The notes under the pieces: model-generated
The model's input: only the letters and a program-made list of their open reading frames with translations
Databases searched by the model: none
What the model was told of the DNA's origin: nothing
Assembly (NCBI GenBank): GCA_048772705.1
Contig: JBLWGC010000159.1
Coordinates: 238,886 to 302,885, forward strand
DNA from: Leidyana gryllorum EB-2025a
Lineage: Eukaryota > Protista > Apicomplexa
DNA: 64,000 nucleotides
Reading direction: 5' to 3'
Position numbers and translations under genes: made by a program
Part shown: positions 10,541 through 63,824 of the stretch, piece after piece
How the letters are laid out: each line of letters starts with the position of its first letter
Numbering within the stretch: position 1 is the first letter of the stretch

Positions 10541-10675
10541 ATGTACATATAGGTCAAGGTTTTTTTGGCCTCCGACTGACGGTGACAAGTGAAACTAACG
10601 AACAAACTGTGATAGAATCAGTGCATCAAGTGTAGTTCACAGAAAGATTTGATAACAATGTACTACGAAAAACAA

Positions 10676-35605: not shown

Positions 35606-35796
35606 GACATGTGCCAACTTGTCAGTCAGAGTGGGGGGGGCCTACCAAATTGGTCTGTGTCAGGTTTGTCATGGGGAGTGAGGAGTTCAGAAGTGGGGTC
35701 GTGAACCGCAGCAGCTAGGCCAGCGGAAGGAGCCATCTTAGGTTGGCTGTCTATAGGTACCCTTGAGTGGTGCACGCCCTAGCTGTCTCAGCGTGC

Positions 35797-37980
35797 ATGT
35801 TGATTTTGAGTTTCGGACCGTGCAATATGCAGACAGTATATGAAGTACTCCCTCAAATTCGACGGCTGCAAGCCGTGGTGTTCCTAATGACCCTCGCCCT
35901 CGTACTCCCATCCCCCGTCTACCCATATTTCTTCACCACCGAGCTCGGCCTCAGCAGCGCTCAGTATGGCCAGGTCGTGGGTGCCACCAGCCTCACTCAT
36001 CTAGGTGCCGCTATTTGTTACGGACGACTAAGTGATGCCATAGGTCGACGTCGTGTAATCATATTCCAATGCACCCTTTCAATGATTCTCTACGCCGTCC
36101 TGGCACATCTCTCCTACACCGTGGATACAGCCCCCACCATCATTGTACCCGCCCTAATCTCTGTCTTTATCGCTCTTGGTTTCTGTAACACTGTCAACTT
36201 GCTCACGTGCTCGGCTGTGTGCGACCTCTGCACCCGCTTCAGCAAGCCCATGTCCGCTAGAATCCCATCGCTCTTCCCAGACAACTCTTTGGCACAACAA
36301 CGTCCAAAGTTCCTCGCCCAAGTTGCGGGAGTCTTGGGTTTGGCCGGCGTTTTTGGCCCTCTCGTGGGCCAGGGAGCACAGACACTCGGCGGAGACCCCT
36401 CGCGACCGACTGTTTGTTTGGCCTTGTCGGGATTCGCGAGTGCCCTGGGGTTGGCTATAGCGGTCTTTGTCAAAGAGACGAACCCTAATGCCAATGCTCC
36501 GAGTCATTACTTCCGTCTGGCACGCGACTGGGCTATGGGAGTACCCACAATGCAACACTCCTCTCCCCTCCTATCGGAAATATCGCAAGCCGACAGTTGC
36601 GTCAATGCCGCTGCCGACTTCTCGCCTGTCTGTCTCCCACACGTAGAATGTGAAATGGCCCGCAATCTCGTTGTTATGGTCTCCAGTCGTGAAACGTCGT
36701 CAGGACCCGACTGTACCCTCGCCGACATTACTCAACGATCCACTCCTGTCGATGCTCTGACGCCGCAGAATGGCGTGAGAGATCGCGCCGTCGACGACGA
36801 ACAACCAGTTGTGGTGCCCCCAAGTCCCGATAGTAGTGTTCCTTTCACCCCTCCCTCAATTTGTACAATTCAATTCGAAGAGGATCCAGACAATGAAGAC
36901 ATCCCGCGAGCCATGTCTACTGCCGACATGTGGGTCGGACTAATTCTGACCTATTTGTGTCAGGCGGTCAAGGCTCTCTCCCTAAGTACCATATCTGTCT
37001 GCTATGCTTTGGTACTGGATGCAATGTTACCCTCCGGTTGGTTCTTTGGCCTAAACCGTACCCAGGTACTCGCCTTGGGTCTGGCGTGCGCGTCTCTCGT
37101 TCGTGTCGCCATTCAATTGAGTTACTTTCAACGCTTCCTCAAAGCAGTGGGGGGCCCGGCTCGGGCCTTTCTCTTTGGCACCGTTTGTATGTCCTTTGGA
37201 CAGCTGTCGTTGTACTGGACCCTGCGTTACCTTCCCGGACATCTCGGACTTCTGGACCACCCTACTTGCCTCAACACCCTAATATTTGCCACAGTACACT
37301 TTCTGACCGTTGGTGGCATCTTCGCCGTCGGACTCGCAGTTGGCGAACCCGCCTTGACCACTCTCATCGCCATCTGTGTCTCTGACAAACCGAGCTACCA
37401 AGGCACCGCACAGGTAAGCTTGAAACTTGAATAAGTCTCAGCATTGTTCGGCCAGGGACTCAACAGTGCGAGCAATCTGCTCGGAGCCACTGTGGGCCCT
37501 CCGATCTTTGGCTGGCTGCTCGGAAAACGTTCCTCGTCGTCGGAAACTGCACCGAAGCTCCCCATCTCGATCCCGCTGGAGGCTTCGGCCGCTGCCGAGG
37601 GGATTGGCAGCGATCCGCAAGTCGGTGCCACCCCGGAAGTAGAGGAAGCGGCTCGGGCTAACGACAGCGGACACAACGGCCTATTCGACGATCAATGGTC
37701 TCTCAAGGCCGACGAGGGGTTCGCACAACCGACCGAGGCGGCCAAAGTGGTCAATCACCCATTCAAGTCGTTCCCTGCTGTGGTGGACAAACTATGGCCG
37801 TTGAGAGTGGATGAGTTGGCAGGCGTAGGCAATGCGGAGATAGTGGAGGTCTCGTCGTCACCAGGTGGCACATACGACCGAGCTGGGTTAGTGTTCTACA
37901 CCGGTGCCACAATCGCACTAGTACCACTGCTATGGGGGAGAAAGTTGCGGAAGATTGCAAAGAATTGGCAGTCTCGATAG
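35797..37980 (+). CDS. MFS transporter (DHA1/Tet-like), two exons
   Basis: MFS motif A YGRLSDAIGRRRVI; GVFGPLVG; GATVGPPIFGWL; intron ~37413-37441; start 35797 or 35827. Confidence 0.85.
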
Positions 37981-48510: not shown

Positions 48511-48619
48511 TACTCCAGCTCCCTCAGTCGCAGGTGGATTTGACTGAAGCGTGTCAATGGGGCTTTTGACGACGGAGACGAGACGGCGGGTACCTCCCTG
48601 TTTACTATCTACAAAAATC

Positions 48620-48784
48620 AACTTACCTGCGGATTGCAACCGTCTGATCAATAAGAGGCGTGCAGAGGGCGGAGCAGCCTTTGCACTACCGGTGGTGTGA
48701 GGCCCTCGGGAGGTCTGAACTAAGTCCAGTGTCTCCCATCTGAGACTTTCTGAGAGGGCGGACGAGGCTTGACTCGACGCCGAC
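48620..48784 (+). ncRNA. U1: U1 snRNA copy 1
   Basis: 5' ACUUACCUG; helix H CGGAU/AUCUG; SL1 loop GAUCAAUAAG; SL2 loop UUGCAC; SL3; Sm-like ACUUUCUGA; terminal SL4; ~165 nt. Confidence 0.92.
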
Positions 48785-48961
48785 AATGTGTTTTCAGACT
48801 GCGATTGACGGGTACGGTACTCTTAGTGACACTATAGGTGAGATTGGCACATCAAATGGTTCAGTAGGCTGAGAACTCTCGAGGCACCCGACGACGGAGA
48901 CGGCAGCGAGTCGGCGGAGACGAGACGGCGGATACCTCCCTGTTTACTGTCTGCAAAAATC

Positions 48962-49126
48962 AACTTACCTGCGGATTGCAACCGTCTGATCACTAAGAGG
49001 CGTGCAGAGGGCGGAGCAGCCTTTGCACTTCCGGTGATGTGAGGCCCTCGGGAGGACTGAACTAAGTCCAGTGTCTCCCATCTGAGACTTTCTGAGAGGG
49101 CGGACGAGGCTTGACTCGACGCCGAC
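48962..49126 (+). ncRNA. U1: U1 snRNA copy 2
   Basis: As copy 1; SL1 loop GAUCACUAAG. Confidence 0.92.
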
Positions 49127-49303
49127 AATGTGTTTTCAGGTTGCGATGGACGGGTAAAGTACTCTTAGTGACACTGTAGGTGAGATTGGCACATCGAATG
49201 GCTCAGTAGGCTGAGGACTCTCGAGGCACCCGACGACGGAGACGGCAGCGGGTCGGCGGAGACGAGACGGCGGGTACCTCCCTGTTTACTATCTACAAAA
49301 ATC

Positions 49304-49468
49304 AACTTACCTGCGGATTGCAACCGTCTGATCAATAAGAGGCGTGCAGAGGGCGGAGCAGCCTTTGCACTTCCGGTGATGTGAGGCCCTCGGGAGGACT
49401 GAACTAAGTCCAGTGTCTCCCATCTGAGACTTTCTGAGAGGGCGGACGAGGCTTGACTCGACGCCGAC
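49304..49468 (+). ncRNA. U1: U1 snRNA copy 3
   Basis: Same U1 motifs and cloverleaf. Confidence 0.92.
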
Positions 49469-49645
49469 AATGTGTTTTCAGGTTGCGATGAACGGGTAAA
49501 GTACTCTTGGTGACACTGTAGGTGAGATTGGCACATCAAATGGTTCAGTAGGCTGAGAACTCTCGAGGCACCCGACGACGGAGACGGCAGCGGGTCGGCG
49601 GAGACGAGACGGCGGGTACCTCCCTGTTCACTATCTGCAAAAATC

Positions 49646-49810
49646 AACTTACCTGCGGATTGCAACCGTCTGATCAATAAGAGGCGTGCAGAGGGCGGAG
49701 CAGCCTTTGCACTACCGGTGGTGTGAGGCCCTCGGGAGGACTGAACTAAGTCCAGTGTCTCCCATCTGAGACTTTCTGAGAGGGCGGACGAGGCTTGACT
49801 CGACGCCGAC
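49646..49810 (+). ncRNA. U1: U1 snRNA copy 4
   Basis: Same U1 motifs and cloverleaf. Confidence 0.92.
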
Positions 49811-49984
49811 AATGTGTTTTCAGGTTGCGAAAGATGGATGACGTACTCTTAGTGACACTGTAGGTGAGATTGGCACACCGAATGGCTCAGTAGGCTGAGG
49901 ACTCTCGAGGCATCCGACGGAGACGGCAGCGAGTCGGCGGAGACGAGACGGCGGGTACCTCCCTGTTCACTATCTACAAAAATC

Positions 49985-50148
49985 AACTTACCTGCGGATT
50001 GCAACCGTCTGATCACTAAGAGGCGTGCAGAGGGCGGAGCAGCCTTTGCACTACCGGTGGTGTGAGGCCCTCGGGAGGACTGAACTAAGTTCATGTCTCC
50101 CATCTGAGACTTTCTGAGAGGGCGGACGAGGCTTGACTCGACGCCGAC
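49985..50148 (+). ncRNA. U1: U1 snRNA copy 5
   Basis: Same motifs; 1-nt deletion in SL3. Confidence 0.9.
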
Positions 50149-50325
50149 GATGTGTTTTCAGGTTGCGATGGACGGGTAAAGTACTCTTAGTGACACTATA
50201 GGTGAGATTGGCACATCAAATGGTTCAGTAGGCTGAGAACTCTCGAGGCACCCGACGACGGAGACGGCAGCGGGTCGGCGGAGACGAGACGGCGGGTACC
50301 TCCCTGTTCACTATCTACAAAAATC

Positions 50326-50490
50326 AACTTACCTGCGGATTGCAACCGTCTGATCACTAAGAGGCGTGCAGAGGGCGGAGCAGCCTTTGCACTACCGGTG
50401 GTGTGAGGCCCTCGGAAGGACTGAACTAAGTTCAGTGTCTCCCATCTGAGACTTTCTGAGAGGGCGGACGAGGCTTGACTCGACGCCGAC
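50326..50490 (+). ncRNA. U1: U1 snRNA copy 6
   Basis: Same motifs; SL3 starts GGAAG. Confidence 0.92.
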
Positions 50491-50667
50491 GATGTGTTTT
50501 CAGGTTGCGATGGACGGGTAAAGTACTCTTAGTGACACTATAGGTGAGATTGGCACATCAAATGGTTCAGTAGGCTGAGAACTCTCGAGGCACCCGACGA
50601 CGGAGACGGCAGCGGGTCGGCGGAGACGAGACGGCGGGTACCTCCCTGTTCACTATCTACAAAAATC

Positions 50668-50832
50668 AACTTACCTGCGGATTGCAACCGTCTGATCACT
50701 AAGAGGCGTGCAGAGGGCGGAGCAGCCTTTGCACTACCGGTGGTGTGAGGCCCTCGGAAGGACTGAACTAAGTTCAGTGTCTCCCATCTGAGACTTTCTG
50801 AGAGGGCGGACGAGGCTTGACTCGACGCCGAC
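50668..50832 (+). ncRNA. U1: U1 snRNA copy 7
   Basis: Same motifs; SL3 starts GGAAG. Confidence 0.92.
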
Positions 50833-51009
50833 AATGTGTTTTCAGGCTGCGATTGACGGGTACGGTACTCTTAGTGACACTATAGGTGAGATTGGCACAT
50901 CAAATGGTTCAGTAGGCTGAGAACTCTCGAGGCACCCGACGACGGAGACTGCACCGAGTCGGCGGAGACGAGACGGCGGGTACCTCTCTGTTTGCTATCT
51001 ACAAAAATC

Positions 51010-51174
51010 AACTTACCTGCGGATTGCAACCGTCTGATCACTAAGAGGCGTGCAGAGGGCGGAGCAGCCTTTGCACTACCGGTGGTGTGAGGCCCTCGGG
51101 AGGACTGAACTAAGTTCAGTGTCTCCCATCTGAGACTTTCTGAGAGGGCGGACGAGGCTTGACTCGACGCCGAC
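51010..51174 (+). ncRNA. U1: U1 snRNA copy 8
   Basis: Same U1 motifs and cloverleaf. Confidence 0.92.
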
Positions 51175-51351
51175 GATGTGTTTTCAGGCTGCGATGGACG
51201 GGTAAAGTACTCTTAGTGACACTATAGGTGAGATTGGCACATCAAATGGTTCAGTAGGCTGAGAACTCTCGAGGCACCCGACGACGGAGACTGCAGCGAG
51301 TCGGCGGAGACGAGACGGCGGGTACCTCCCTGTTTACTGTCTGCAAAAATC

Positions 51352-51516
51352 AACTTACCTGCGGATTGCAACCGTCCGATCAATAAGAGGCGTGCAGAGG
51401 GCGGAGCAGCCTTTGCACTACCGGTGGTGTGAGGCCCTCGGGAGGACTGAACTAAGTTCAGTGTCTCCCATCTGAGACTTTCTGAGAGGGCGGACGGGGC
51501 TTGACTCGACGCCGAC
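51352..51516 (+). ncRNA. U1: U1 snRNA copy 9
   Basis: Same motifs; substitutions at the SL1 closing pair and in SL4. Confidence 0.9.
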
Positions 51517-51695
51517 AATGTGTGTTTTCAGGCTGCGATGGACGGGTAAAGTACTCTTAGTGACACTATAGGTGAGATTGGCACATCAAATGGTTCAGTA
51601 GGCTGAGAACTCTCGAGGCACCCGACGACGGAGACGGCAGCGGGTCGGCGGAGACGAGACGGCGGGTACCTCCCTGTTCACTATCTGCAAAAATC

Positions 51696-51860
51696 AACTT
51701 ACCTGCGGACTGCAACCGTCTGATCAATAAGAGGCGTGCAGAGGGCGGAGCAGCCTTTGCACTACCGGTGGTGTGAGGCCCTCGGGAGGACTGAACTAAG
51801 TTCAGTGTCTCCCATCTGAGACTTTCTGAGAGGGCGGACGAGGCTTGACTCGACGCCGAC
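51696..51860 (+). ncRNA. U1: U1 snRNA copy 10
   Basis: Same motifs; helix H reads CGGAC. Confidence 0.9.
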
Positions 51861-52037
51861 AATGTGTTTTCAGGTTGCGAAGGATGGATAACGTACTCTT
51901 AGTGACACTATAGGTGAGATTGGCACATCAAATGGTTCAGTAGGCTGAGAACTCTCGAGGCACCCGACGACGGAGACGGCAGCGGGTCGGCGGAGACGAG
52001 ACGGCGGGTACCTCCCTGTTCACTATCTACAAAAATC

Positions 52038-52202
52038 AACTTACCTGCGGATTGCAACCGTCTGATCACTAAGAGGCGTGCAGAGGGCGGAGCAGCCTTT
52101 GCACTACCGGTGGTGTGAGGCCCTCGGAAGGACTGAACTAAGTTCAGTGTCTCCCATCTGAGACTTTCTGAGAGGGCGGACGAGGCTTGACTCGACGCCG
52201 AC
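52038..52202 (+). ncRNA. U1: U1 snRNA copy 11
   Basis: Same motifs; SL3 starts GGAAG. Confidence 0.92.
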
Positions 52203-52379
52203 GATGTGTTTTCAGGTTGCGATGGACGGGTAAAGTACTCTTAGTGACACTATAGGTGAGATTGGCACATCAAATGGTTCAGTAGGCTGAGAACTCTCGA
52301 GGCACCCGACGACGGAGACGGCAGCGGGTCGGCGGAGACGAGACGGCGGGTACCTCCCTGTTCACTATCTACAAAAATC

Positions 52380-52544
52380 AACTTACCTGCGGATTGCAAC
52401 CGTCTGATCAATGAGAGGCGTGCAGAGGGCGGAGCAGCCTTTGCACTACCGGTGGTGTGAGGCCCTCGGGAGGACTGAACTAAGTCCAGTGTCTCCCATC
52501 TGAGACTTTCTGAGAGGGCGGACGGGGCTTGACTCGACGCCGAC
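52380..52544 (+). ncRNA. U1: U1 snRNA copy 12
   Basis: Same motifs; SL1 loop GAUCAAUGAG; followed by T6. Confidence 0.92.
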
Positions 52545-52783
52545 ATTTTTTGCCAGAGACATATGCAGCAAAACATAGCTCCCACTCCAGTGCAAAGTAT
52601 TGTGAACCGTCGATTCAAAGCGGTGAGGATAGGGAGAGAGACGGCGAGGGTTTTGGCGGGGCTGCCAGATTAAATTTCGTGACCATCATCTACCCCTTTA
52701 ACGCTTCCTACATATCAATACTGCCCCTCGAACCATCCCTTCGTATCGATAATTAAAGAGCGGACGTTCTTTGAATCTCAACA

Positions 52784-54190
52784 ATGGAATCAGTGCATCA
52801 ACAAGATGTTTTACTCATCACAATGGAAGCACATGGACACATTCGTCCGTTTATGGCACTGGGGCAGTTATTGCATCAATACAGTAATGGAGAAATTCGT
52901 TGTCATCTTCTGTACCCGAATATCGGCAATGATAAATTACCTGTCTCTGAATTTCCGGATGTTGGTATATTAGCCATAGAGGTCCCGCAAGAGGCTCGGG
53001 ACATCTCCGACATGATAGAGCGATTCAAGTGGATGATCTCACACGGTGAGCTGCTGCTGGAGCGTGGTTTCAATTTGGCGAGCAATTTGAGTCTCCGAGC
53101 GGTGATCTATGAGTCTTTCCTGGAATGGGGTCACAATCTTGCCGAGATGCTGGGAGTCAAAAGCTTCGCATTCTGTACCTTCGCACTACACATGTACTAT
53201 CTGATGGGCAGAATCGGATGGGGTTCTCAATTGACTCCGTCTGATGAGCAAAGAACCATAAAAGGATTGGGCACTCTCAGTGCACAATGTCTCCCATACG
53301 GTGACGGAACAGTTTGGAAAGGAATGTTGAAACCTGGCAGCTCTCGCAGTATCATAGCGAATGACAGCCCGTGCCAACCAGGCTTTCCAATTCTACAAGA
53401 CATTGTCGAAAGAGATCTACTTGTGGCCACCCCAAAGTATGAGAAGGGCGTGGTACACACCCTTGGATATCTCAACGATATGCTGCCAGCGACCAGATCC
53501 AACGATGGGGCTGATGACACTATCGCATGGCTCGATACTCAACCCGACCGCTCAGTCATCTTTGTTGCACTCGGCTCCTGGGTTCAACTGGATGTGTGTG
53601 ATGTCATTGAGTTGGCTGAGGCCTTACGACTGCTGGATGCTCCATTCCTATGGGCTCTTCGAGCCCGGGTGGGAGACAGTAAGAGGTGTAATGGCTCCCC
53701 AGACGTTGGAGGGGGGGATCAGGCTGAGCATTGCCGACTTCCGCCTGTGGATACCGACCAGTACGGTCTCCCTGTGGGCTATCGAGAGGAAATAGAAGGA
53801 CGCTCTCTAATAGTGCCGTGGGTGGATCAGAAGAGAGTACTGAAGCATCGAGCTATCAAGCTGTTCATCACACACTGTGGATGGAACAGTTTGACGGAGA
53901 GTGTTGCTATCAGTCCGGTCCCCAAGGCATTCATCCCTGTGGCTGGAGAACAGGCCCTGAACGCTGAAGTAGCTGAACGGTTCTGGAAGATTGGTAAACA
54001 GCTCTGGGTGGACGGCAAGCCGAAAACTCTGCAACGGAATGTCATCGTTGAGAGGGTGACAGAGTGCCTGAAGGATCCCACAATTACACAAACTGCCGAG
54101 AAGCTGCACCGCGAGCATCAGACTCACTTGAATTCGAGAGCAGAACTCTGTATTCAGCGCCTATTGGCTGATATACGCAGTGACCAATAG
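52784..54190 (+). CDS. family 1 UDP-glycosyltransferase, plant PSPG-type (468 aa, intronless)
   Basis: AHGHIRPF (catalytic His), VIYESFLEWG..AEMLGV, WLDTQPDRSVIFVALGS, PFLWALR and PSPG box WVDQKRVLKHRAIKLFITHCGWNSLTESV..P..FIPVAGEQ; no signal peptide or C-terminal TM. Confidence 0.95.
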   Translation: MESVHQQDVLLITMEAHGHIRPFMALGQLLHQYSNGEIRCHLLYPNIGNDKLPVSEFPDVGILAIEVPQEARDISDMIERFKWMISHGELLLERGFNLASNLSLRAVIYESFLEWGHNLAEMLGVKSFAFCTFALHMYYLMGRIGWGSQLTPSDEQRTIKGLGTLSAQCLPYGDGTVWKGMLKPGSSRSIIANDSPCQPGFPILQDIVERDLLVATPKYEKGVVHTLGYLNDMLPATRSNDGADDTIAWLDTQPDRSVIFVALGSWVQLDVCDVIELAEALRLLDAPFLWALRARVGDSKRCNGSPDVGGGDQAEHCRLPPVDTDQYGLPVGYREEIEGRSLIVPWVDQKRVLKHRAIKLFITHCGWNSLTESVAISPVPKAFIPVAGEQALNAEVAERFWKIGKQLWVDGKPKTLQRNVIVERVTECLKDPTITQTAEKLHREHQTHLNSRAELCIQRLLADIRSDQ

Positions 54191-54620: not shown

Positions 54621-57600
54621 CTAAAGAGCAACTTCCTGGGTGCCGGGATCTCTCACTTGGAGACATAGGCGGTAAGCAGTGGCACTAGCACGGCTGGCCA
54701 CTCGGCGTCTCTTCCGAGACCTTGACTTCGGGGCTGGCCGTAGGTCAGTTCCCCGAGCGTGTAGTGTTGCCGTCAGCACATCCTCGGCCTTGGCGAGCGG
54801 CTTGGCGCGTAGGTCGGCGAGCTCGTCTAGCTCGGCGAGTTGGAGCATCTCCGGCGCTTGCGGTGCAGCCAAGCGGAGCAGCTCCCCGACGGACACCGTT
54901 CTCTCTTCCTGCGGATCTCGGCAGGATTTAATGGTGGCGCCCGTGCCTGACTCGCTCACCGCGATGACCTCATAAGGTAAGCTGAAGGTCGGGGTGAAGC
55001 GGCTCGCGCCGTAGTGGCGAGTCAGTGCAGCGCGCTCACCTTCGCTGAGGCGGACGACGACGGTGTCTCCGACCTCAGGGAGGTAGCGTACGGCTGGGCG
55101 GCGAGCGTCGGCTGCTTTTGCCGAGAGTTGCACGGCGTGCTGCCTCGCCAGTTCCAGAAGTTGGAGACGGTCTCCCGTGTCCAGTGTAGGCTGGAGGGCG
55201 TCTAACTCTTGGCTCGTCGGGGTGCCCATGGGTAGCCCCGAGAGCATGAAGAAGGGGGACTCACCCAATGCGGGGTGATGCGTGGCTCGATAGGCGTACA
55301 TTACTGTGGCCACTGCGGTTGGTAAGGGGAGGCTGGACTGGGCCACGAGCGCGTTGAGTCCACGGTTCAGGAACTGGTGAAAGGCCTCGCATACTGCGTT
55401 CCCTTGCTTGTGGGCTTTCCAGGTGTACATGACCTGGATGCCATGGCGCCTCGCGTCTTCCTGGAACGACTCGGCCCTAAAGGCCGTGCCGTTATCACAA
55501 ATGAGCCTCGTTGGGGCTCCGTACCGGCAGATCCAATCCTCGTAGAGGACTCGCCAGGCAGTCTTGGCCGTTACGTCCGGGACTGCTATGGCCTCGGCCA
55601 CTCGTAGGCAATGGTCAATCATCGTTTGGATGTAGTAGACCTTACCACCCCAGGGGAAACTTCCTACGTGGTCAATGGCCACCGTGTCGAACGGGCGTGG
55701 AGTCACGTGGTCTCCGGGGCCAGCGGTGTTTACGATTGCTCGACGGCGCGCGCAGATTTGGCATTGCCGCACCATCTCGGTTACGTCCGCTCGTAAGTTT
55801 GGCCAATAGAAGCGCCTCGCGATGGCTGCGGCTGTTCGCCTGATCCCTTGGTGGGCGCCAACAGTACCACAGTGGTGGTAGAGAACGATTTGAGAACGGA
55901 GTGCGGCTGGCACATAGGCTCGCATGGACTCCGTCCACCAGACTCCGCCCCTATGGGTGCAGCGGAAGGCGGTCGGCTCGCTCTCTGCGGCCGTCGCTGC
56001 TTTAAACTCTTCCAGCGTTGGCAGTGTGAAGCCAGTGTACGCTGGTTGAACCGAAATCTCGAGTCGGTTCAGGAGTGCGGTCAACGATATGCGGTCATCG
56101 ATGACGGCATCCATCGGTTGGTCGTTGTCGATCCGGCTTAGGTGATCGACGTGACCCTGCAAAATCCCTTTACGGTAGTGGATCTCGAAGTCATACTCGC
56201 TCAGAGCGAGCGCCCATCGGGCGATCCGGCGGTTGGAGGCTGTCCAGAGCCACTTCAACCCCTCGTGGTCCGTACGGACTGTGAACGGTCGGTACCTCAG
56301 GTACTCGGCGTACTTCGCGATGGCACAGACGATGATGAAAGCTTCCAGTTCGCGGATAGGCCACTTCCTCTCCGCTTCCGACCATCGACGGGAGTAATAG
56401 GCGATTGGCCGGGGCTCTCCGTCGTCTCCGGGCTGCAGCAAGATGGCACCTCCTCCGATCTCACTAGCGTCGGTGTCGAGGATGAACTCCTTATCCGGAT
56501 CGGGGTACGCTAAGAGGACGTCCTGCGCAAGTGCCTCTTGCAGTGCGCGGTAGGCCGCGACGGTCTCTTCCGTCTCATCGATCGGCCCGTCTGCGCCCCC
56601 TTTGAACAGGTCGTACAGAGCACTCGAGATCTCGCCGAATTGGGGGATGAAGGTCCTGAAGTAGGATGCTAGCCCTAAGAACGAGCGAAGTTCCGACATC
56701 GTTCTGGGGAAGGGCGTCTCCATAACCGCCTTGACCTTGGCCGGGTTTGGCCGGATCCCATTCTCATTCACGACGTGCCCCAAGTACAGGATCTCCTTCT
56801 GGAGGGCCGATGACTTCTTGATGTTTAGGTACAGTTTCGCGTCAGTCAACCGTTTCAGGACCTCGTTGAGGGTCCGGTTGTGCTCATCGACGCTTCGCGA
56901 GTAGATGACGATATCATCCAAGTAAACTAGGACACCGTTCCCTAGTAGGGGTCCTAGCACTCTGTGCATGACTCGTTGGAAAGTGGCAGGCGCGTTCCGT
57001 AAGCCAAAAGGCATCGCCGTACAGGCGTACAGTCCTCGCGGGGTTACTATCGTCGTCTTCATCACGTCCTCCTCCGCCACCCTGATCTGATGGTACCCAG
57101 ACTTCAGATCAAGAGATGTGAAGACGGCTGCTCCTCGCAGGGACCAGACCAAGTGTTGGATGTGGGGGAGCGGGAACCTGTCCGGTACCGTGACTTTATT
57201 CAACTTGCGATAGTCAACGCAGATGCGTAGTTCGCCTGTCTTCTTGGGGACGATGACTACGGGCGAGGACCAGGGAGACCCTTCCACTGGTACCAGTGCT
57301 CCAACCTTCACGAGGTCGCCGAACTGGCGGTCCACTTCGGCCTCGGCGTCTGGGTGTAGGGGCCTGGCGCGCTGGAAGACAGGGCGTGCTCCAGGGGTGA
57401 TCTCAATGCGGTGAGTCTCTATGTCGCACTTGGCGATGTGGGTCTTCGCCCAGCACGCCTCGTTCCGCTGGAAGATCTCCAGTACGTCTCTCTTGGCCTC
57501 TGGACCAAAGACATCTGACGTGATTGCCATCACGTCCTCGAGGGTCCGGTGGTCGATGGCTTGCTGAAGCTCAACGAGGTTCAGCTCATAGGTTCCGCCC

Positions 57601-59026
57601 GGTGCCTCGAGTGGCACGGTTTCCCCTCCTATCTCCAGTGTTCGTGTTGCGTAGTCTAATCGACTGGCGGTGCCCAGTAGGTATGTACGGCCGAGTAAGT
57701 CGCTGCCGACCGCCTCGTCTGGCACCACTAGACAGCGCTCCAGTGCTGTGGTTGTGCCCACGGTTATCGGGATGGTCACCTCTCCCAAGATCTGTACTGC
57801 TCCTCCTACGCCCTTCGCCCCGAGCTGGCTGGCTCCCACTGTATCCGGCTGGGTCCCATGCTTCATCGCGTTCTGGAGTGTACTGCGCCTCAGGACTGTC
57901 ACGTCCGCCCCAGGGTCCACCGTCATCACTATCGGAATATGACCAACGAGAGCTTTCACGCTGCCGAAGCTCTGCGAGAATGCGATCGTTTCGGCTGGGC
58001 TCATGGCCTGCGGCTGGCATTGTACACGACCCACGTGGGCCTGAGTCGCGGTGGGGGTCTCACCGGTGGGTTGCCGCTGCTGTTCCGTCGGGGGCGTCAT
58101 GTCTTCGTCCACCTGGGTGGGCTCTGTAGTGTTTCCGGTCGCAGCCTGCTGGGAGGCGTTCCGGATGGCGTCTCTCTTGTCTCTCTGCCTGTCCCGGTTC
58201 TTCTGGTTCTTCATCGCCTCCTGCTGCTGCCGCTCTCGGAAGTAACCACCTAGCCTGCCCAGCGCCTCTTCGAGCGACTTGGGCTGCTTTACTACGATGT
58301 GAACGGCAGTCTTCCTTTGGTGGAGGACCATCTGCGACCCTAACTGGATCTCCTTGACTTCGCAGTCCTGCTCACGGTGTCCCTTCGTGCCACACTTTGG
58401 GCAGGGGAGGCGACACCGAGTCTCCGTGTGTCCGGCTTGCTGACACCGGTAGCAAATGATTGGGGGCTTTGCTGTGCCCGTAGTGCCTATTGGGGCTGAC
58501 TCGCCCGCTACGTGGTACAGACGTGGCCAGGAGGAGATAGTCTCTTCCTCACTGGACTCAGAGTCTGACGTATATCGAGCGTTGAGGCTTCGTAGTGCCG
58601 CTACGACCTCAGCCAACGTCTCGGGACGGGGGTGGAGCCCGTGTAACTTCGCGTTTAAGGCCGGCGGGGCCATGCGGACTAGGGTCGCCACCCAGTCCGT
58701 TTCTCGACGCCGCTTCCGCGGGTCCCAACGCTTACTCAACCTGTCGTGAGTCTTACGTAATGCCTTGAAGGTTCGGAGGGCCTCATTCAGTGTCTGGCAC
58801 GGTGGTGGCCGCTGCGCTAGCTTCCGAATTTGACGGAACCAGTCTCCTCCCTCGAAGTGTTCGCGCACCAGCGCGTCGCAGAAAGCTGTTGCAGTCTCCG
58901 CCTGTATGTTCGAGGAGCTCAGAGTCTCTCCCAGAGACCCGCACGCTGTTGCCCTGATGAGCAAGGGGAGTGCTCGGTCTGGGTATCCACGCGCTGCCAG
59001 CGCTATGGCCCAGTTGTGGCATTGAT
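54621..59026 (-). CDS. Gag-Pol polyprotein of copy B, 5'-truncated
   Basis: The 1447 aa of the track ORF match the C-terminal part of ORF 59136..63824; the N-terminus is missing at the junction. Confidence 0.85.
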
Positions 59027-59197
59027 TGAGAGGTGAAAGGAAAGTAACAACTTCCTAGAGACACAACGTCTCCCTAGAGACGTAACACCCGTAGCGGTAG
59101 TTTATTGTTTTGCAAAAGACAGAAGCTAGACCACGATGCTCGACGCTAATAACCCAGAAACGTATCATTTAAGCCCTCGCACTCCCAGAACCACTCA
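59027..59197 (+). repeat. 5' LTR of copy A (171 bp; TGAG...CTCA termini)
   Basis: Direct repeat of 63833-64000. Confidence 0.97.
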
Positions 59198-62100
59198 AAG
59201 TGGTGCATCTGCCGGGAAACAGCGAGTAAGTGTACCCACCTGGGATCCGTGGGGTCCGGGGCCCTCTGACAGTGAGGACAGTGGTTACGAGTCCATAGAC
59301 GAAGATGACAGGGGTCGCCCTGCACTAGGAAGACGAGACGCAGACATGGTTGCGCGGATGTTCCAGCAACTGAGGGTCAAGCAGACCTTCGACCCCGCGT
59401 CCGAACAGGAATTTGACGATCAATGCCACAACTGGGCCATAGCGCTGGCAGCGCGTGGATACCCAGACCGAGCACTCCCCTTGCTCATCAGGGCAACAGC
59501 GTGCGGGTCTCTGGGAGAGACTCTGAGCTCCTCGAACATACAGGCGGAGACTGCAACAGCTTTCTGCGACGCGCTGGTGCGCGAACACTTCGAGGGAGGA
59601 GACTGGTTCCGTCAAATTCGGAAGCTAGCGCAGCGGCCACCACCGTGCCAGACACTGAATGAGGCCCTCCGAACCTTCAAGGCATTACGTAAGACTCACG
59701 ACAGGTTGAGTAAGCGTTGGGACCCGCGGAAGCGGCGTCGAGAAACGGACTGGGTGGCGACCCTAGTCCGCATGGCCCCGCCGGCCTTAAACGCGAAGTT
59801 ACACGGGCTCCACCCCCGTCCCGAGACGTTGGCTGAGGTCGTAGCGGCACTACGAAGCCTCAACGCTCGATATACGTCAGACTCTGAGTCCAGTGAGGAA
59901 GAGACTATCTCCTCCTGGCCACGTCTGTACCACGTAGCGGGCGAGTCAGCCCCAATAGGCACTACGGGCACAGCAAAGCCCCCAATCATTTGCTACCGGT
60001 GTCAGCAAGCCGGACACACGGAGACTCGGTGTCGCCTCCCCTGCCCAAAGTGTGGCACGAAGGGACACCGTGAGCAGGACTGCGAAGTCAAGGAGATCCA
60101 GTTAGGGTCGCAGATGGTCCTCCACCAAAGGAAGACTGCCGTTCACATCGTAGTAAAGCAGCCCAAGTCGCTCGAAGAGGCGCTGGGCAGGCTAGGTGGT
60201 TACTTCCGAGAGCGGCAGCAGCAGGAGGCGATGAAGAACCAGAAGAACCGGGACAGGCAGAGAGACAAGAGAGACGCCATCCGGAACGCCTCCCAGCAGG
60301 CTGCGACCGGAAACACTACAGAGCCCACCCAGGTGGACGAAGACATGACGCCCCCGACGGAACAGCAGCGGCAACCCACCGGTGAGACCCCCACCGCGAC
60401 TCAGGCCCACGTGGGTCGTGTACAATGCCAGCCGCAGGCCATGAGCCCAGCCGAAACGATCGCATTCTCGCAGAGCTTCGGCAGCGTGAAAGCTCTCGTT
60501 GGTCATATTCCGATAGTGATGACGGTGGACCCTGGGGCGGACGTGACAGTCCTGAGGCGCAGTACACTCCAGAACGCGATGAAGCATGGGACCCAGCCGG
60601 ATACAGTGGGAGCCAGCCAGCTCGGGGCGAAGGGCGTAGGAGGAGCAGTACAGATCTTGGGAGAGGTGACCATCCCGATAACCGTGGGCACAACCACAGC
60701 ACTGGAGCGCTGTCTAGTGGTGCCAGACGAGGCGGTCGGCAGCGACTTACTCGGCCGTACATACCTACTGGGCACCGCCAGTCGATTAGACTACGCAACA
60801 CGAACACTGGAGATAGGAGGGGAAACCGTGCCACTCGAGGCACCGGGCGGAACCTATGAGCTGAACCTCGTTGAGCTTCAGCAAGCCATCGACCACCGGA
60901 CCCTCGAGGACGTGATGGCAATCACGTCAGATGTCTTTGGTCCAGAGGCCAAGAGAGACGTACTGGAGATCTTCCAGCGGAACGAGGCGTGCTGGGCGAA
61001 GACCCACATCGCCAAGTGCGACATAGAGACTCACCGCATTGAGATCACCCCTGGAGCACGCCCTGTCTTCCAGCGCGCCAGGCCCCTACACCCAGACGCC
61101 GAGGCCGAAGTGGACCGCCAGTTCGGCGACCTCGTGAAGGTTGGAGCACTGGTACCAGTGGAAGGGTCTCCCTGGTCCTCGCCCGTAGTCATCGTCCCCA
61201 AGAAGACAGGCGAACTACGCATCTGCGTTGACTATCGCAAGTTGAATAAAGTCACGGTACCGGACAGGTTCCCGCTCCCCCACATCCAACACTTGGTCTG
61301 GTCCCTGCGAGGAGCAGCCGTCTTCACATCTCTTGATCTGAAGTCTGGGTACCATCAGATCAGGGTGGCGGAGGAGGACGTGATGAAGACGACGATAGTA
61401 ACCCCGCGAGGACTGTACGCCTGTACGGCGATGCCTTTTGGCTTACGGAACGCGCCTGCCACTTTCCAACGAGTCATGCACAGAGTGCTAGGACCCCTAC
61501 TAGGGAACGGTGTCCTAGTTTACTTGGATGATATCGTCATCTACTCGCGAAGCGTCGATGAGCACAACCGGACCCTCAACGAGGTCCTGAAACGGTTGAC
61601 TGACGCGAAACTGTACCTAAACATCAAGAAGTCATCGGCCCTCCAGAAGGAGATCCTGTACTTGGGGCACGTCGTGAATGAGAATGGGATCCGGCCAAAC
61701 CCGGCCAAGGTCAAGGCGGTTATGGAGACGCCCTTCCCCAGAACGATGTCGGAACTTCGCTCGTTCTTAGGGCTAGCATCCTACTTCAGGACCTTCATCC
61801 CCCAATTCGGCGAGATCTCGAGTGCTCTGTACGACCTGTTCAAAGGGGGCGCAGACGGGCCGATCGATGAGACGGAAGAGACCGTCGCGGCCTACCGCGC
61901 ACTGCAAGAGGCACTTGCGCAGGACGTCCTCTTAGCGTACCCCGATCCGGATAAGGAGTTCATCCTCGACACCGACGCTAGTGAGATCGGAGGAGGTGCC
62001 ATCTTGCTGCAGCCCGGAGACGACGGAGAGCCCCGGCCAATCGCCTATTACTCCCGTCGATGGTCGGAAGCGGAGAGGAAGTGGCCTATCCGCGAACTGG

Positions 62101-63824
62101 AAGCTTTCATCATCGTCTGTGCCATCGCGAAGTACGCCGAGTACCTGAGGTACCGACCGTTCACAGTCCGTACGGACCACGAGGGGTTGAAGTGGCTCTG
62201 GACAGCCTCCAACCGCCGGATCGCCCGATGGGCGCTCGCTCTGAGCGAGTATGACTTCGAGATCCACTACCGTAAAGGGATTTTGCAGGGTCACGTCGAT
62301 CACCTAAGCCGGATCGACAACGACCAACCGATGGATGCCGTCATCGATGACCGCATATCGTTGACCGCACTCCTGAACCGACTCGAGATTTCGGTTCAAC
62401 CAGCGTACACTGGCTTCACACTGCCAACGCTGGAAGAGTTTAAAGCAGCGACGGCCGCAGAGAGCGAGCCGACCGCCTTCCGCTGCACCCATAGGGGCGG
62501 AGTCTGGTGGACGGAGTCCATGCGAGCCTATGTGCCAGCCGCACTCCGTTCTCAAATCGTTCTCTACCACCACTGTGGTACTGTTGGCGCCCACCAAGGG
62601 ATCAGGCGAACAGCCGCAGCCATCGCGAGGCGCTTCTATTGGCCAAACTTACGAGCGGACGTAACCGAGATGGTGCGGCAATGCCAAATCTGCGCGCGCC
62701 GTCGAGCAATCGTAAACACCGCTGGCCCCGGAGACCACGTGACTCCACGCCCGTTCGACACGGTGGCCATTGACCACGTAGGAAGTTTCCCCTGGGGTGG
62801 TAAGGTCTACTACATCCAAACGATGATTGACCATTGCCTACGAGTGGCCGAGGCCATAGCAGTCCCGGACGTAACGGCCAAGACTGCCTGGCGAGTCCTC
62901 TACGAGGATTGGATCTGCCGGTACGGAGCCCCAACGAGGCTCATTTGTGATAACGGCACGGCCTTTAGGGCCGAGTCGTTCCAGGAAGACGCGAGGCGCC
63001 ATGGCATCCAGGTCATGTACACCTGGAAAGCCCACAAGCAAGGGAACGCAGTATGCGAGGCCTTTCACCAGTTCCTGAACCGTGGACTCAACGCGCTCGT
63101 GGCCCAGTCCAGCCTCCCCTTACCAACCGCAGTGGCCACAGTAATGTACGCCTATCGAGCCACGCATCACCCCGCATTGGGTGAGTCCCCCTTCTTCATG
63201 CTCTCGGGGCTACCCATGGGCACCCCGACGAGCCAAGAGTTAGACGCCCTCCAGCCTACACTGGACACGGGAGACCGTCTCCAACTTCTGGAACTGGCGA
63301 GGCAGCACGCCGTGCAACTCTCGGCAAAAGCAGCCGACGCTCGCCGCCCAGCCGTACGCTACCTCCCTGAGGTCGGAGACACCGTCGTCGTCCGCCTCAG
63401 CGAAGGTGAGCGCGCTGCACTGACTCGCCACTACGGCGCGAGCCGCTTCACCCCGACCTTCAGCTTACCTTATGAGGTCATCGCGGTGAGCGAGTCAGGC
63501 ACGGGCGCCACCATTAAATCCTGCCGAGATCCGCAGGAAGAGAGAACGGTGTCCGTCGGGGAGCTGCTCCGCTTGGCTGCACCGCAAGCGCCGGAGATGC
63601 TCCAACTCGCCGAGCTAGACGAGCTCGCCGACCTACGCGCCAAGCCGCTCGCCAAGGCCGAGGATGTGCTGACGGCAACACTACACGCTCGGGGAACTGA
63701 CCTACGGCCAGCCCCGAAGTCAAGGTCTCGGAAGAGACGCCGAGTGGCCAGCCGTGCTAGTGCCACTGCTTACCGCCTATGTCTCCAAGTGAGAGATCCC
63801 GGCACCCAGGAAGTTGCTCTTTAG
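59136..63824 (+). CDS. single-ORF Gag-Pol polyprotein (1562 aa)
   Basis: Two CCHC knuckles (CYRCQQAGHTETRC, CPKCGTKGHREQDC), protease VDPGAD, RT LDLKSGYHQ/MPFGL/YLDD, RNase H TDAS, integrase H-H-CQIC plus D,D,E. Confidence 0.97.
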   Translation: MLDANNPETYHLSPRTPRTTQSGASAGKQRVSVPTWDPWGPGPSDSEDSGYESIDEDDRGRPALGRRDADMVARMFQQLRVKQTFDPASEQEFDDQCHNWAIALAARGYPDRALPLLIRATACGSLGETLSSSNIQAETATAFCDALVREHFEGGDWFRQIRKLAQRPPPCQTLNEALRTFKALRKTHDRLSKRWDPRKRRRETDWVATLVRMAPPALNAKLHGLHPRPETLAEVVAALRSLNARYTSDSESSEEETISSWPRLYHVAGESAPIGTTGTAKPPIICYRCQQAGHTETRCRLPCPKCGTKGHREQDCEVKEIQLGSQMVLHQRKTAVHIVVKQPKSLEEALGRLGGYFRERQQQEAMKNQKNRDRQRDKRDAIRNASQQAATGNTTEPTQVDEDMTPPTEQQRQPTGETPTATQAHVGRVQCQPQAMSPAETIAFSQSFGSVKALVGHIPIVMTVDPGADVTVLRRSTLQNAMKHGTQPDTVGASQLGAKGVGGAVQILGEVTIPITVGTTTALERCLVVPDEAVGSDLLGRTYLLGTASRLDYATRTLEIGGETVPLEAPGGTYELNLVELQQAIDHRTLEDVMAITSDVFGPEAKRDVLEIFQRNEACWAKTHIAKCDIETHRIEITPGARPVFQRARPLHPDAEAEVDRQFGDLVKVGALVPVEGSPWSSPVVIVPKKTGELRICVDYRKLNKVTVPDRFPLPHIQHLVWSLRGAAVFTSLDLKSGYHQIRVAEEDVMKTTIVTPRGLYACTAMPFGLRNAPATFQRVMHRVLGPLLGNGVLVYLDDIVIYSRSVDEHNRTLNEVLKRLTDAKLYLNIKKSSALQKEILYLGHVVNENGIRPNPAKVKAVMETPFPRTMSELRSFLGLASYFRTFIPQFGEISSALYDLFKGGADGPIDETEETVAAYRALQEALAQDVLLAYPDPDKEFILDTDASEIGGGAILLQPGDDGEPRPIAYYSRRWSEAERKWPIRELEAFIIVCAIAKYAEYLRYRPFTVRTDHEGLKWLWTASNRRIARWALALSEYDFEIHYRKGILQGHVDHLSRIDNDQPMDAVIDDRISLTALLNRLEISVQPAYTGFTLPTLEEFKAATAAESEPTAFRCTHRGGVWWTESMRAYVPAALRSQIVLYHHCGTVGAHQGIRRTAAAIARRFYWPNLRADVTEMVRQCQICARRRAIVNTAGPGDHVTPRPFDTVAIDHVGSFPWGGKVYYIQTMIDHCLRVAEAIAVPDVTAKTAWRVLYEDWICRYGAPTRLICDNGTAFRAESFQEDARRHGIQVMYTWKAHKQGNAVCEAFHQFLNRGLNALVAQSSLPLPTAVATVMYAYRATHHPALGESPFFMLSGLPMGTPTSQELDALQPTLDTGDRLQLLELARQHAVQLSAKAADARRPAVRYLPEVGDTVVVRLSEGERAALTRHYGASRFTPTFSLPYEVIAVSESGTGATIKSCRDPQEERTVSVGELLRLAAPQAPEMLQLAELDELADLRAKPLAKAEDVLTATLHARGTDLRPAPKSRSRKRRRVASRASATAYRLCLQVRDPGTQEVAL
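59201..59218 (+). promoter_or_regulatory. primer binding site, complementary to a tRNA-Gly(GCC)-type 3' end
   Basis: TGGTGCATCTGCCGGGAA, 3 nt after the LTR, is the reverse complement of UUCCCGGCAGAUGCA-CCA; eukaryotic tRNA-Gly(GCC) ends in TTCCCGGC..ATGCA. Confidence 0.8.

Follow-up and report, generated by a model that had tools for sequence, protein, structure and literature searches.

An old family of plant-type UDP-glycosyltransferases in the gregarine Leidyana gryllorum

Introduction

The described enzymes closest to the gene reported here are the land-plant UDP-glycosyltransferases (UGTs) with a PSPG box, for instance the flavonoid 3-O-glucosyltransferases Sb3GT1 (8i0e), VvGT1 (2c1x) and UGT78G1 (3hbf), as well as UGT74F2, UGT72B1 and C-glycosyltransferases. 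In plant UGTs, the terminal Gln of the PSPG box is linked to the use of UDP-glucose. Plant-type UGTs are, to our knowledge, regarded as almost exclusive to plants, and we know of none from model apicomplexans. In a survey of family-1 glycosyltransferases (GT1), 98.9% of those from plants fell into a single group (PMC7316871).

Animal and baculovirus UGTs (UGT1/UGT2 and the ecdysteroid UDP-glucosyltransferase, EGT) belong to the same Pfam family, PF00201, and perform a similar conjugation chemistry on small lipophilic molecules; the animal enzymes carry a signal peptide and, at the C-terminus, a membrane anchor. In function they are analogues for the inactivation of toxins or hormones. The bacterial macrolide-type glycosyltransferases (MGTs; TIGR01426, OleD/YjiC type) share the GT1 superfamily and the fold. 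Plant-type UGTs of non-plants, which are candidates for parallel transfers, are found in Lobosporangium transversale (Mortierellomycota) and in the tardigrade Hypsibius exemplaris (a protein named 'UGT74D1'), with one protein each among our named matches. A protein of Gregarina niphandrodes is named 'UDP-glucosyltransferase' (XP_011130240.1), and transcripts of cockroach gregarines (EukProt EP01053-EP01057) belong to the same family. Nothing on these gregarine UGT genes was found in the literature searched.

Here we describe a UGT gene in a window of 64,000 nucleotides from the gregarine Leidyana gryllorum EB-2025a (assembly GCA_048772705.1, contig JBLWGC010000159.1, positions 238,886 to 302,885), together with its paralogs and its relatives in other organisms. 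A first-pass annotation had read the gene as an intronless plant-type UGT acquired from plants.

Results

The window gene encodes a plant-type UGT

The UGT open reading frame (positions 52784..54190 of the window, + strand; the C159 copy, after its contig) runs from ATG to stop and encodes 468 amino acids. It is a single exon with zero internal stops, collinear with plant UGTs. The protein scored 44.5 bits against PF00201 UDPGT (cut-off 19.5, E 1.2e-11). In a sequence search of solved structures the top match was 8i0e (E 4e-27), the best 60 matches listed were plant UGTs wherever the depositor's name tells, and residues 9-461 aligned end to end with residues 17-465 of 8znm. The land-plant motifs listed by the first-pass annotation were present along the protein, namely GH at residues 18-19, YESF, WLD..DRSVIFVALGS, PFLWALR, HCGWNS and GEQ.

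Neither a signal peptide nor a membrane segment was detected in the window protein, by a simple hydropathy scan and in the AF2 model; the hydropathy peak coincides with a strand of the core, and the protein ends in an amphipathic helix. Two other identities were considered and rejected. The animal ER-membrane type was discarded, as the scan and the model revealed no N-terminal signal peptide and no C-terminal transmembrane helix, and a bacterial MGT was discarded because the protein scored 27.2 bits with TIGR01426, whose cut-off is 260. The best sequence and fold matches listed include no evident animal or viral UGT. Our reading is that the window protein is a soluble plant-type (PSPG) family-1 UDP-glycosyltransferase of GT-B fold, native, functional-looking and, by prediction, cytosolic. 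In this respect the initial description, that of a soluble, intronless UGT of the plant PSPG type in the genome of a gregarine (an apicomplexan), is upheld.

Fold, catalytic residues and donor box

The AF2 model of the window protein had a pLDDT of 85 and a pTM of 0.87, with the first Rossmann strand starting at residue 7. The top 50 Foldseek matches of this model were all plant UGTs (TM about 0.75, range 0.64-0.78; E 1e-24 to 1e-28), which identifies a GT-B fold. In the model, the N-terminal Rossmann domain, presumed to be the acceptor-binding half, covers about residues 7-235 (52802..53488, + strand), and the C-terminal Rossmann domain, presumed to bind the UDP-sugar, about residues 243-440 (53510..54103, + strand). 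A loop of variable length, defined by alignment and model, extends from PFLWALR to GLP (about residues 297-325; 53672..53758, + strand). Its residues 297-316 had a pLDDT under 50 and were modelled as disordered, and it is longer than the corresponding loop of the two anthocyanidin-GT-type plant UGTs aligned.

The presumed catalytic base is His19 of the GH motif (codon at 52838..52840, + strand). The GH pair was found in all 16 intact paralogs (see below) and was invariant in a 16-sequence alignment with other gregarine relatives. Glu110 (codon at 53111..53113, + strand) aligns with the Asp that plant enzymes use in catalysis, which bears out the earlier remark that Glu replaces the usual Asp in the YESF motif. 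This site is occupied by Asp in 14 of the 16 intact paralogs, and by Glu only in the window copy and in its closest paralog, C216a. Plant UGTs pair a His near the N-terminus with an Asp about 100 residues further on; in the window protein the pair is His19 and Glu110, a conservative change.

The PSPG-type donor box, delimited by motif alignment, extends from W346 to Q390 (53819..53953, + strand), and contains W346, Q349, V352, L353, H355, H364-S369 (HCGWNS), E372, E389 and Q390; it thus terminates in Glu-Gln. It is 45 residues long, versus 44 in the plant consensus, because (S/T)-P-x-P stands in place of G-V-P; the extra residue precedes the conserved Pro and is common to all close paralogs. 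H(C/A/G)GWNS is kept in 15 of the 16 intact paralogs and the D/E partner in all of them.

Overall, the window protein resembles land-plant UGTs in length, GT-B fold, solubility, catalytic His with an acidic partner, HCGWNS...E...(D/E)Q box and, over the whole length, order of the conserved blocks; the plant genes are mostly intronless too. It differs from them in sequence (about 20-38% identity), in the replacement of Asp by Glu and in its apicomplexan host, and the gregarine proteins differ from them in the additional residue of the PSPG box, in the longer and variable loop after PFLWALR and in forming a separate clade (see below).

Genomic setting of the window copy

The gene had been placed between a U1 array and retrotransposons, and this position was confirmed. 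The upstream flank is a U1 snRNA gene array (48573..52545, + strand) formed by a 342-bp unit repeated 11.6 times in tandem. The units matched Rfam U1 over its full length with 43-51 bits (E 1e-9 to 1e-11, E-value mode); nothing was reported at the Rfam gathering threshold, the gathering score of 69.5 being above the unit scores. The downstream flank contains an ORF of 1447 amino acids (54621..58964, - strand), with a GC3 of 0.70 versus 0.51 for the UGT gene, then a gypsy-type retrotransposon ORF of 1562 amino acids (59136..63824, + strand) in which RT, RNase H and integrase domains were identified. Another ORF of that length (1562 amino acids) adjoins the UGT array of contig C216. Glutathione transferases (sigma-like, multi-domain) and an MFS transporter are also encoded in the window.

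The window gene belongs to a family of 17 loci

The 15.5-Mb genome contains 17 UGT loci on 9 contigs, of which 16 are intact and one is a pseudogene; two five-gene tandem arrays are present among them, and all 17 loci passed the PF00201 cut-off. The paralogs are 26-67% identical to the window copy (tblastn). Mean identity among paralogs was lowest in the N-terminal domain (31%), and reached 45% in the C-terminal domain and 63% in the PSPG box. Synonymous divergence (dS) was saturated in every pair of paralogs, including the closest one, so that no dN/dS ratio could be computed; dN was 0.24 for the closest pair, which, together with the saturated dS, points to long purifying selection.

In base composition (GC and GC3) the UGT genes are similar to host genes and different from retrotransposons. 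Actin and an Rpb1-type RNA polymerase gene come after the C216 array, and a bacterial-type carboxylesterase gene is located within the array of contig C41. The gene order C216e-C216d-neighbour is kept on a contig of another gregarine-like assembly, with 63, 69 and 46% amino-acid identity, respectively. Since the family is distributed over 9 contigs and has a host-like composition, contamination or a chimeric contig does not explain it, and the chimera that the first-pass annotation had named as a danger to its reading is not supported. The notion of a single, recently transferred gene did not survive: there are 17 diverged loci, dS is saturated even with the nearest paralog, and the family is common to other gregarines.

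Relatives in other organisms

Word-index searches, each over up to 8000 candidates, returned 6, 8 and 47 matches, and the relatives that they missed were recovered by exhaustive search. The named relatives amounted to about 80 proteins (about 30 of the 150 best exhaustive-search matches, plus the named word-index matches), a sample without algal, bryophyte and most protist UGTs, so that the family may be more widely distributed among protists. Named gregarine homologues came from G. niphandrodes, Gregarina sp. Poly1, Gregarina sp. Pseudo9, Blabericola migrator and Protomagalhaensia wolfi; the Blabericola, Protomagalhaensia and Gregarina Poly1/Pseudo9 data are four cockroach gregarine transcriptomes (PMC8051059). 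One of these relatives is a Gregarina trophozoite transcript whose name records a high coverage in the assembly (cov about 3387). All other named relatives were land-plant UGTs, save one Mortierellomycete fungal protein and one tardigrade protein. The best identity with a plant protein was about 35-38%, over part of the length only (word-index search).

No other alveolate or SAR protein was present among the named best matches of the exhaustive and profile searches; the databases searched include EukProt, from which the names returned were those of insect gregarines, plus Lobosporangium and Amborella as co-source. No bacterial relative was found in a PSPG motif-pattern scan of 185,579 prokaryote species, and no relative was found in the plasmid sequences searched by tblastn. 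The protein language-model neighbours of the window protein were all Streptophyta, and the nearest large clusters likewise.

Phylogeny

A GT1 phylogeny was constructed with TIGR01426 MGTs as a bacterial outgroup (obtained via a 16S pattern, then a family search); taxa beyond the named ones were labelled by their clustering with named plants. All gregarine copies formed one clade (SH-aLRT 100), and the only other large group consisted of plant sequences. The gregarine clade grouped with plant UGTs relative to the bacterial MGTs, which a long branch separates from both. The Mortierellomycete (Lobosporangium) protein fell within the gregarine clade, on a long branch (SH-aLRT 98); therefore, this clade is not strictly gregarine and its history may be more complex. 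The Hypsibius protein was found with plant sequences. The window gene belongs to a 12-member sub-clade composed only of copies from this genome and two public-assembly sequences; the G. niphandrodes and cockroach gregarine sequences share the clade and the motifs and are placed in other sub-clades.

Two topologies were compared by the AU test in IQ-TREE (LG+F+G4). Monophyletic plants, with gregarines outside, had a p value of 0.745, versus 0.485 for gregarines placed among plant groups; the constrained tree used was the best by about iteration 110 of a full search. An apparent rejection of one topology (p 0.044), observed with a constrained tree from a fast search, was gone after the full constrained search. 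As both topologies fit equally, 'sister to' and 'nested in' plant UGTs are indistinguishable, and the tree fixes neither the donor nor the direction. The gregarine sequences form a clade of their own and join no particular plant group.

Discussion

Origin of the family

The explanation that we prefer, with moderate confidence, is that this native PSPG UGT descends from a gene gained once, long ago and probably from the plant lineage, which has since expanded into a family, and that it would act in the conjugation of small molecules. The closest non-gregarine relatives are land-plant UGTs, which makes an ancient plant-lineage acquisition the most likely origin; as no other alveolate is among the named relatives, and the motif-pattern scan of prokaryote species found no bacterial one, a foreign origin is still the leading idea. 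The family would have been acquired once, by horizontal transfer from the plant (streptophyte) lineage or from some other carrier of plant-type UGTs outside the present sample. When the insect-infecting eugregarines (Gregarina, Blabericola, Protomagalhaensia) radiated, it was already there in more than one copy, and it has since evolved by tandem birth-and-death. What is retained, as the leading idea, of the transfer from plants proposed by the first-pass annotation is the foreign origin; the event was neither recent nor limited to one gene.

Vertical descent is the main competing account. A plant-like UGT of an early eukaryote or alveolate ancestor, or of the plastid endosymbiont, could have been kept in terrestrial eugregarines and lost in other apicomplexans. 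The gregarine clade is nested in no specific plant group, and the tree that leaves it outside plants is at least as good; dS saturation and the kept gene order show the family to be old within gregarines, and the fungal member of the clade hints at a wider distribution outside plants. Such a history would nevertheless have required many independent losses, the nearest large clusters are all streptophyte and no other alveolate or SAR protein appeared among the named best matches, which makes vertical descent rather unlikely. Much less credit can be given to the idea that this genome received one land-plant UGT fairly recently, directly or through the diet of the host. The plant-template motifs over the whole length, the intronless gene and the adjoining mobile elements would agree with it, but they are outweighed by the diverged paralogs with saturated dS, by relatives in at least five other gregarine species, by the syntenic orthologous pair in another assembly, by the host-like composition, and by the low and partial identity with plant proteins. 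Unless the contigs concerned are artefacts, the paralog, ortholog and saturation data refute a recent single transfer, and we regard it as very improbable. Finally, plant, host or fungal DNA might have been fused with a contig of the parasite, since the gene lies where repeats meet (U1 array and retrotransposons) and assemblies can break at such places. This is hardly conceivable for a family that occupies 9 contigs, has actin and RNA polymerase genes as neighbours and a host-like GC3, shares microsynteny with another assembly, and has gregarine genome and transcriptome sequences, rather than plant ones, as its closest relatives.

Possible role of the enzymes

By homology, the UDP-sugar would be held by the PSPG box in the conserved C-terminal domain, and the acceptor would be seated in the variable N-terminal domain. 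His19, with Glu110 polarising it, would take a proton from a hydroxyl (or an amine or thiol) group on a small lipophilic acceptor, which would then attack C1 of the sugar, with inverting chemistry. Judging from gene context and sequence features, the likely role is the conjugation of small lipophilic molecules met in the insect gut, for instance phenolics from the diet or other xenobiotics. The faster divergence of the acceptor domain than of the donor domain points in this direction; so do the tandem arrays and the presence of glutathione transferase and MFS transporter genes in the window and of a carboxylesterase gene in the C41 array, neighbourhood being weak evidence.

The same enzymes might have another task, the glycosylation of metabolites made by the parasite itself, be it for storage, the cyst wall or pigments, or of host signals such as ecdysteroids, as baculovirus EGT does. 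Plant UGTs act on endogenous and xenobiotic substrates alike, and the high coverage tag of the Gregarina trophozoite transcript would fit such a task; being devoid of secretion signals, the enzymes would act inside the parasite. However, enzymes of environmental response usually show just this pattern, a large tandem family whose acceptor domain evolves fast and which is linked to genes for GSTs, an esterase and an MFS transporter; the best matches are all of plant type, and in sequence the family shows no kinship with the EGT-type UGTs of animals or viruses. We therefore consider this other task possible but rather doubtful.

Returning to the conjugation of gut molecules, we tentatively suggest that an ancestor of the insect-gut eugregarines captured a plant-lineage UGT, expanded the family and joined further conjugation genes, themselves acquired or expanded (the bacterial-type carboxylesterase of the C41 array, and the GSTs and MFS transporter of the window), to it in a phase-I/II/III-style xenobiotic toolkit, a scenario for which the odds are less than even. 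If true, this toolkit would have helped apicomplexans to colonise plant- and detritus-feeding terrestrial arthropods, and protists would then have a counterpart of the detoxification gene that whiteflies obtained from plants. On a still more speculative version of this scenario, some paralogs may glucosylate host ecdysteroids in the manner of baculovirus EGT.

In conclusion, the first reading of this locus is corrected, the event being ancient and family-wide rather than a recent single transfer. A maintained gregarine family of 17 genes, common to terrestrial eugregarines, offers a testable case of an old inter-kingdom gain followed by expansion, and suggests that gregarines have a small-molecule metabolism not described so far.

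The window gene encodes a plant-type UDP-glycosyltransferase

The gene at 52784–54190 (+) is an uninterrupted ORF of 468 aa, from ATG to stop. Its product matches Pfam UDPGT over residues 249–402 (44.5 bits, curated cut-off 19.5), and in one solved-structure alignment residues 9–461 pair with residues 17–465 of the plant enzyme; the ORF is therefore collinear with plant UDP-glycosyltransferases (UGTs) from end to end and intronless, as stated in the first-pass annotation. The top solved structure was Sb3GT1 (8i0e, E 4e-27), further matches included UGT74F2, Os79, UGT708 C-glycosyltransferases, VvGT1 and UGT71G1, and the best 60 matches listed were plant UGTs wherever the depositor's name tells. 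An AlphaFold2 model built from an alignment of 16 relatives (mean pLDDT 85, pTM 0.87) consists of two Rossmann-like domains, with disorder limited to residues 297–316. Its best 50 Foldseek matches in the PDB were all plant UGTs (E 1e-24 to 1e-28, TM about 0.7–0.78), which bears out the plant template claimed for the whole length. Neither a signal peptide nor a membrane segment was present in a hydropathy scan or in the model, so that the protein is soluble, again as first read, and is not an animal membrane UGT. A bacterial macrolide glycosyltransferase (MGT) was also rejected, as the NCBIfam match to this family (TIGR01426) reached 27 bits, far below the cut-off of 260. In conclusion, small variants aside, all features that define plant-type family-1 UGTs and could be tested are present in the window protein.

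The motifs first listed are real. Gly18-His19 is invariant in a 16-sequence alignment, and the PSPG donor-sugar box (W346–Q390) contains Q349, V352, L353, H355, HCGWNS (364–369), E372 and the terminal Glu-Gln. Compared with plant family-1 UGTs, the window protein has a longer loop, a box of 45 residues instead of the consensus 44, and a Glu in place of Asp. The extra residue, found in all close paralogs, results from (S/T)-P-x-P at the place of the plant G-V-P. The catalytic Asp of the plant enzyme (ITDAF) corresponds in the alignment to Glu110 (YESF), confirming the substitution noted at first; the Glu is private to the window copy and its nearest paralog, C216a, the 14 other intact paralogs having Asp. 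By homology to plant enzymes, the C-terminal domain would hold the UDP-sugar via the PSPG box, and the acceptor nucleophile, activated by His19 with the help of Glu110, would attack C1 in a direct displacement. In plant UGTs, the terminal Gln of the box is associated with glucose donors. The 12 close paralogs differ most in the N-terminal, acceptor-side domain (31% identical on average), less in the C-terminal domain (45%) and least in the PSPG box (63%), which fits a constant donor and diversifying acceptors.

The window copy belongs to a native gene family

The gene had been read as one acquired from plants; it is not a lone gene. A search of the L. gryllorum assembly (15.5 Mb, 237 contigs) identified 17 UGT loci on nine contigs, all 17 passing the Pfam cut-off. 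Ten are in two tandem arrays, five on contig C216 (13958–27552) and five on contig C41 (8650–18683). By tblastn, the paralogs are 26% to 67% identical to the window copy, C216a being the nearest; the four farthest are plant-type too, and two of these (on C230 and C35) matched solely plant UGTs in the PDB. Sixteen loci are intact ORFs of 445–580 aa. The sole decayed copy (C182:83407–84837) carries two in-frame stops, TAG and TAA, which fits birth-and-death turnover. One copy, C41c, may be inactive, judging from the loss of HCGWNS and of the terminal DQ.

Contamination or a local mis-join cannot account for the base composition, neighbours, saturation and synteny of these genes. The UGT has a host-like GC3 (0.51, compared with 0.49–0.59 for the host ORFs of the window), and genes for actin and an Rpb1-type RNA polymerase come after the C216 array. 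Synonymous sites were saturated in all pairs tested, among them window/C216a and an orthologous pair across assemblies, while dN was 0.24–0.46; the youngest duplication is therefore already ancient, and the copies have been under purifying selection. A 5-kb contig of a public assembly (ERR10900114) carries orthologues of C216e (63% aa identity), C216d (69%) and the next non-UGT gene (46%) in the same order, hence this tandem pair is older than the split of the two species.

Upstream of the window gene lies a tandem array of 11.6 units of 342 bp (48573–52545, +). In E-value mode, each unit matched Rfam U1 across all 166 model positions (43–51 bits, E 1e-9 to 1e-11), in agreement with the U1 array first reported here, and the array is predicted to consist of U1 snRNA genes, of a divergent type. 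As these scores are below the gathering score (69.5), annotation at the gathering threshold misses every copy, and it gave zero matches in 48573–52545. Downstream are two large ORFs with a GC3 of 0.69–0.70, sharply different from that of the UGT and of the host ORFs, one of 1447 aa (54621–58964, −) and one at 59136–63824 (+); the retrotransposons described beside the gene were substantiated for the latter, which has reverse transcriptase, RNase H and integrase domains. An ORF beside the C216 UGT array (C216:148–4833) has 1562 aa, a length identical to that of this gypsy-type gag-pol ORF; if both belong to the same element family, mobile elements may have helped to spread UGT copies.

Gregarine UGTs form an old clade allied to plant UGTs

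Among 1.84 billion cluster representatives searched exhaustively with HMMER, 3344 matched at E up to 0.001, 22 of them at E up to 1e-30. Taxon names were obtained for about 30 of the best 150, a named set without algal or bryophyte sequences. The relatives that group with the L. gryllorum copies are a Gregarina niphandrodes protein annotated 'UDP-glucosyltransferase' (XP_011130240.1), proteins of Gregarina sp. Poly1, Gregarina sp. Pseudo9, Blabericola migrator and Protomagalhaensia wolfi, several public assemblies, of which three belong to a single run series (ERR10900112, ERR10900114, ERR10900127), and a single protein of the fungus Lobosporangium transversale. Salomaki et al. (2021; PMC8051059) sequenced the EukProt gregarines, which are parasites of the cockroach gut; glycosyltransferases are not mentioned in that paper. 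With a profile of diverse gregarine members, the named matches were gregarines, then land plants (angiosperms, Cryptomeria, Ceratopteris, Amborella), and none was from another alveolate. A pattern scan across bacteria and archaea (185,579 species) found no relative, nor did tblastn against plasmids. The nearest language-model and structure clusters were all Streptophyta, for the window protein and the fungal protein alike.

A first tree (106 rows, IQ-TREE, LG+C20 PMSF, SH-aLRT, unrooted) separated 68 sequences, among them every named plant protein and a tardigrade protein (support 99), from the gregarine sequences except the C230 paralog, the fungal protein and the remaining public-assembly sequences; the C230 paralog and its Logan partner were beside the plant block. 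In a second tree (80 rows), rooted on seven bacterial MGTs fetched as an outgroup, gregarines, fungus and public assemblies formed one clade (support 100, stem 0.56), which shares an unresolved polytomy with several groups of plant UGTs. The window copy pairs with C216a as its sister (support 99), within a 14-row sub-clade of 12 L. gryllorum copies and two public-assembly sequences, with no cockroach-gregarine sequence; cockroach gregarines hold expanded sub-clades of their own, which is a birth-and-death pattern. The gregarine clade was recovered in all trees run.

Under LG+F+G4, a plants-monophyletic tree, from a full search that ended before completion, had a log-likelihood of -66013.3, compared with -66017.5 for the unconstrained tree (AU p 0.745 and 0.485 respectively). 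The gregarine family is thus one old lineage with an affinity to plant UGTs, either sister to all sampled plant UGTs or an early branch among them, two placements that fit these data equally well. With respect to the acquisition from plants proposed at first, the affinity to plant UGTs stands, but the copies form an old clade of their own.

Two proteins from other organisms were observed in these trees. The Mortierellomycete protein (P0017; L. transversale KAF9900825.1/ORY96108.1) is inside the gregarine clade with G. niphandrodes P0026 and one public-assembly sequence (SH-aLRT 98, long branch), and is a further isolated case of a plant-type UGT outside plants. The tardigrade protein (P0077; Hypsibius exemplaris OWA50019.1, 'putative UDP-glycosyltransferase 74D1') is among plant UGTs in both trees, possibly through a separate plant-to-animal transfer or contamination of the tardigrade assembly.

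Gene context suggests a role in xenobiotic conjugation

The window contains two adjacent glutathione S-transferase (GST) genes with two or three GST units each, of 467 aa (9182–10588, −) and 750 aa (10676–12931, −), the first being closest in the PDB to sigma- and alpha-class GSTs and prostaglandin D synthase, and an MFS transporter ORF (35767–37434, +). Inside the C41 UGT array is a 316-aa Abhydrolase_3 carboxylesterase gene (C41:13722–14669, −; 8723–9670 of locus L014). It matches bacterial HSL-family esterases (PDB 7yc0, E 2.5e-96), is 47% identical, across 99% of its length, to plasmid or chromid genes of Enterococcus and actinomycetes, and is a candidate bacterial acquisition beside the UGTs. 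On a Logan contig (L157, SRR31860986), a flavodoxin-domain gene (846 aa) lies about 3.5 kb from a gregarine-clade UGT; its best L. gryllorum match (C41:29495–31363, 32% identity) lies about 11 kb away from the UGTs of the C41 array. Linkage between UGTs and a redox partner may be conserved.

The named UGT carriers are gut parasites of cockroaches, and G. niphandrodes is a beetle parasite. Together with these gut-parasite carriers, the large, tandemly duplicated family, its fast-evolving acceptor half and its GST, MFS and esterase neighbours suggest that the UGTs conjugate lipophilic xenobiotics that the parasite absorbs from its host's gut, in line with the detoxification proposed at first; they could also act on an endogenous substrate or a host-hormone target. 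We found no paper discussing a gregarine UGT family, despite the one annotated G. niphandrodes protein. According to a GT1 survey (PMC7316871), the group formed by plant GT1 enzymes has almost no members from outside plants. The novelty is in the setting: apicomplexans with an expanded family of plant-type UGTs, an unexpected host range.
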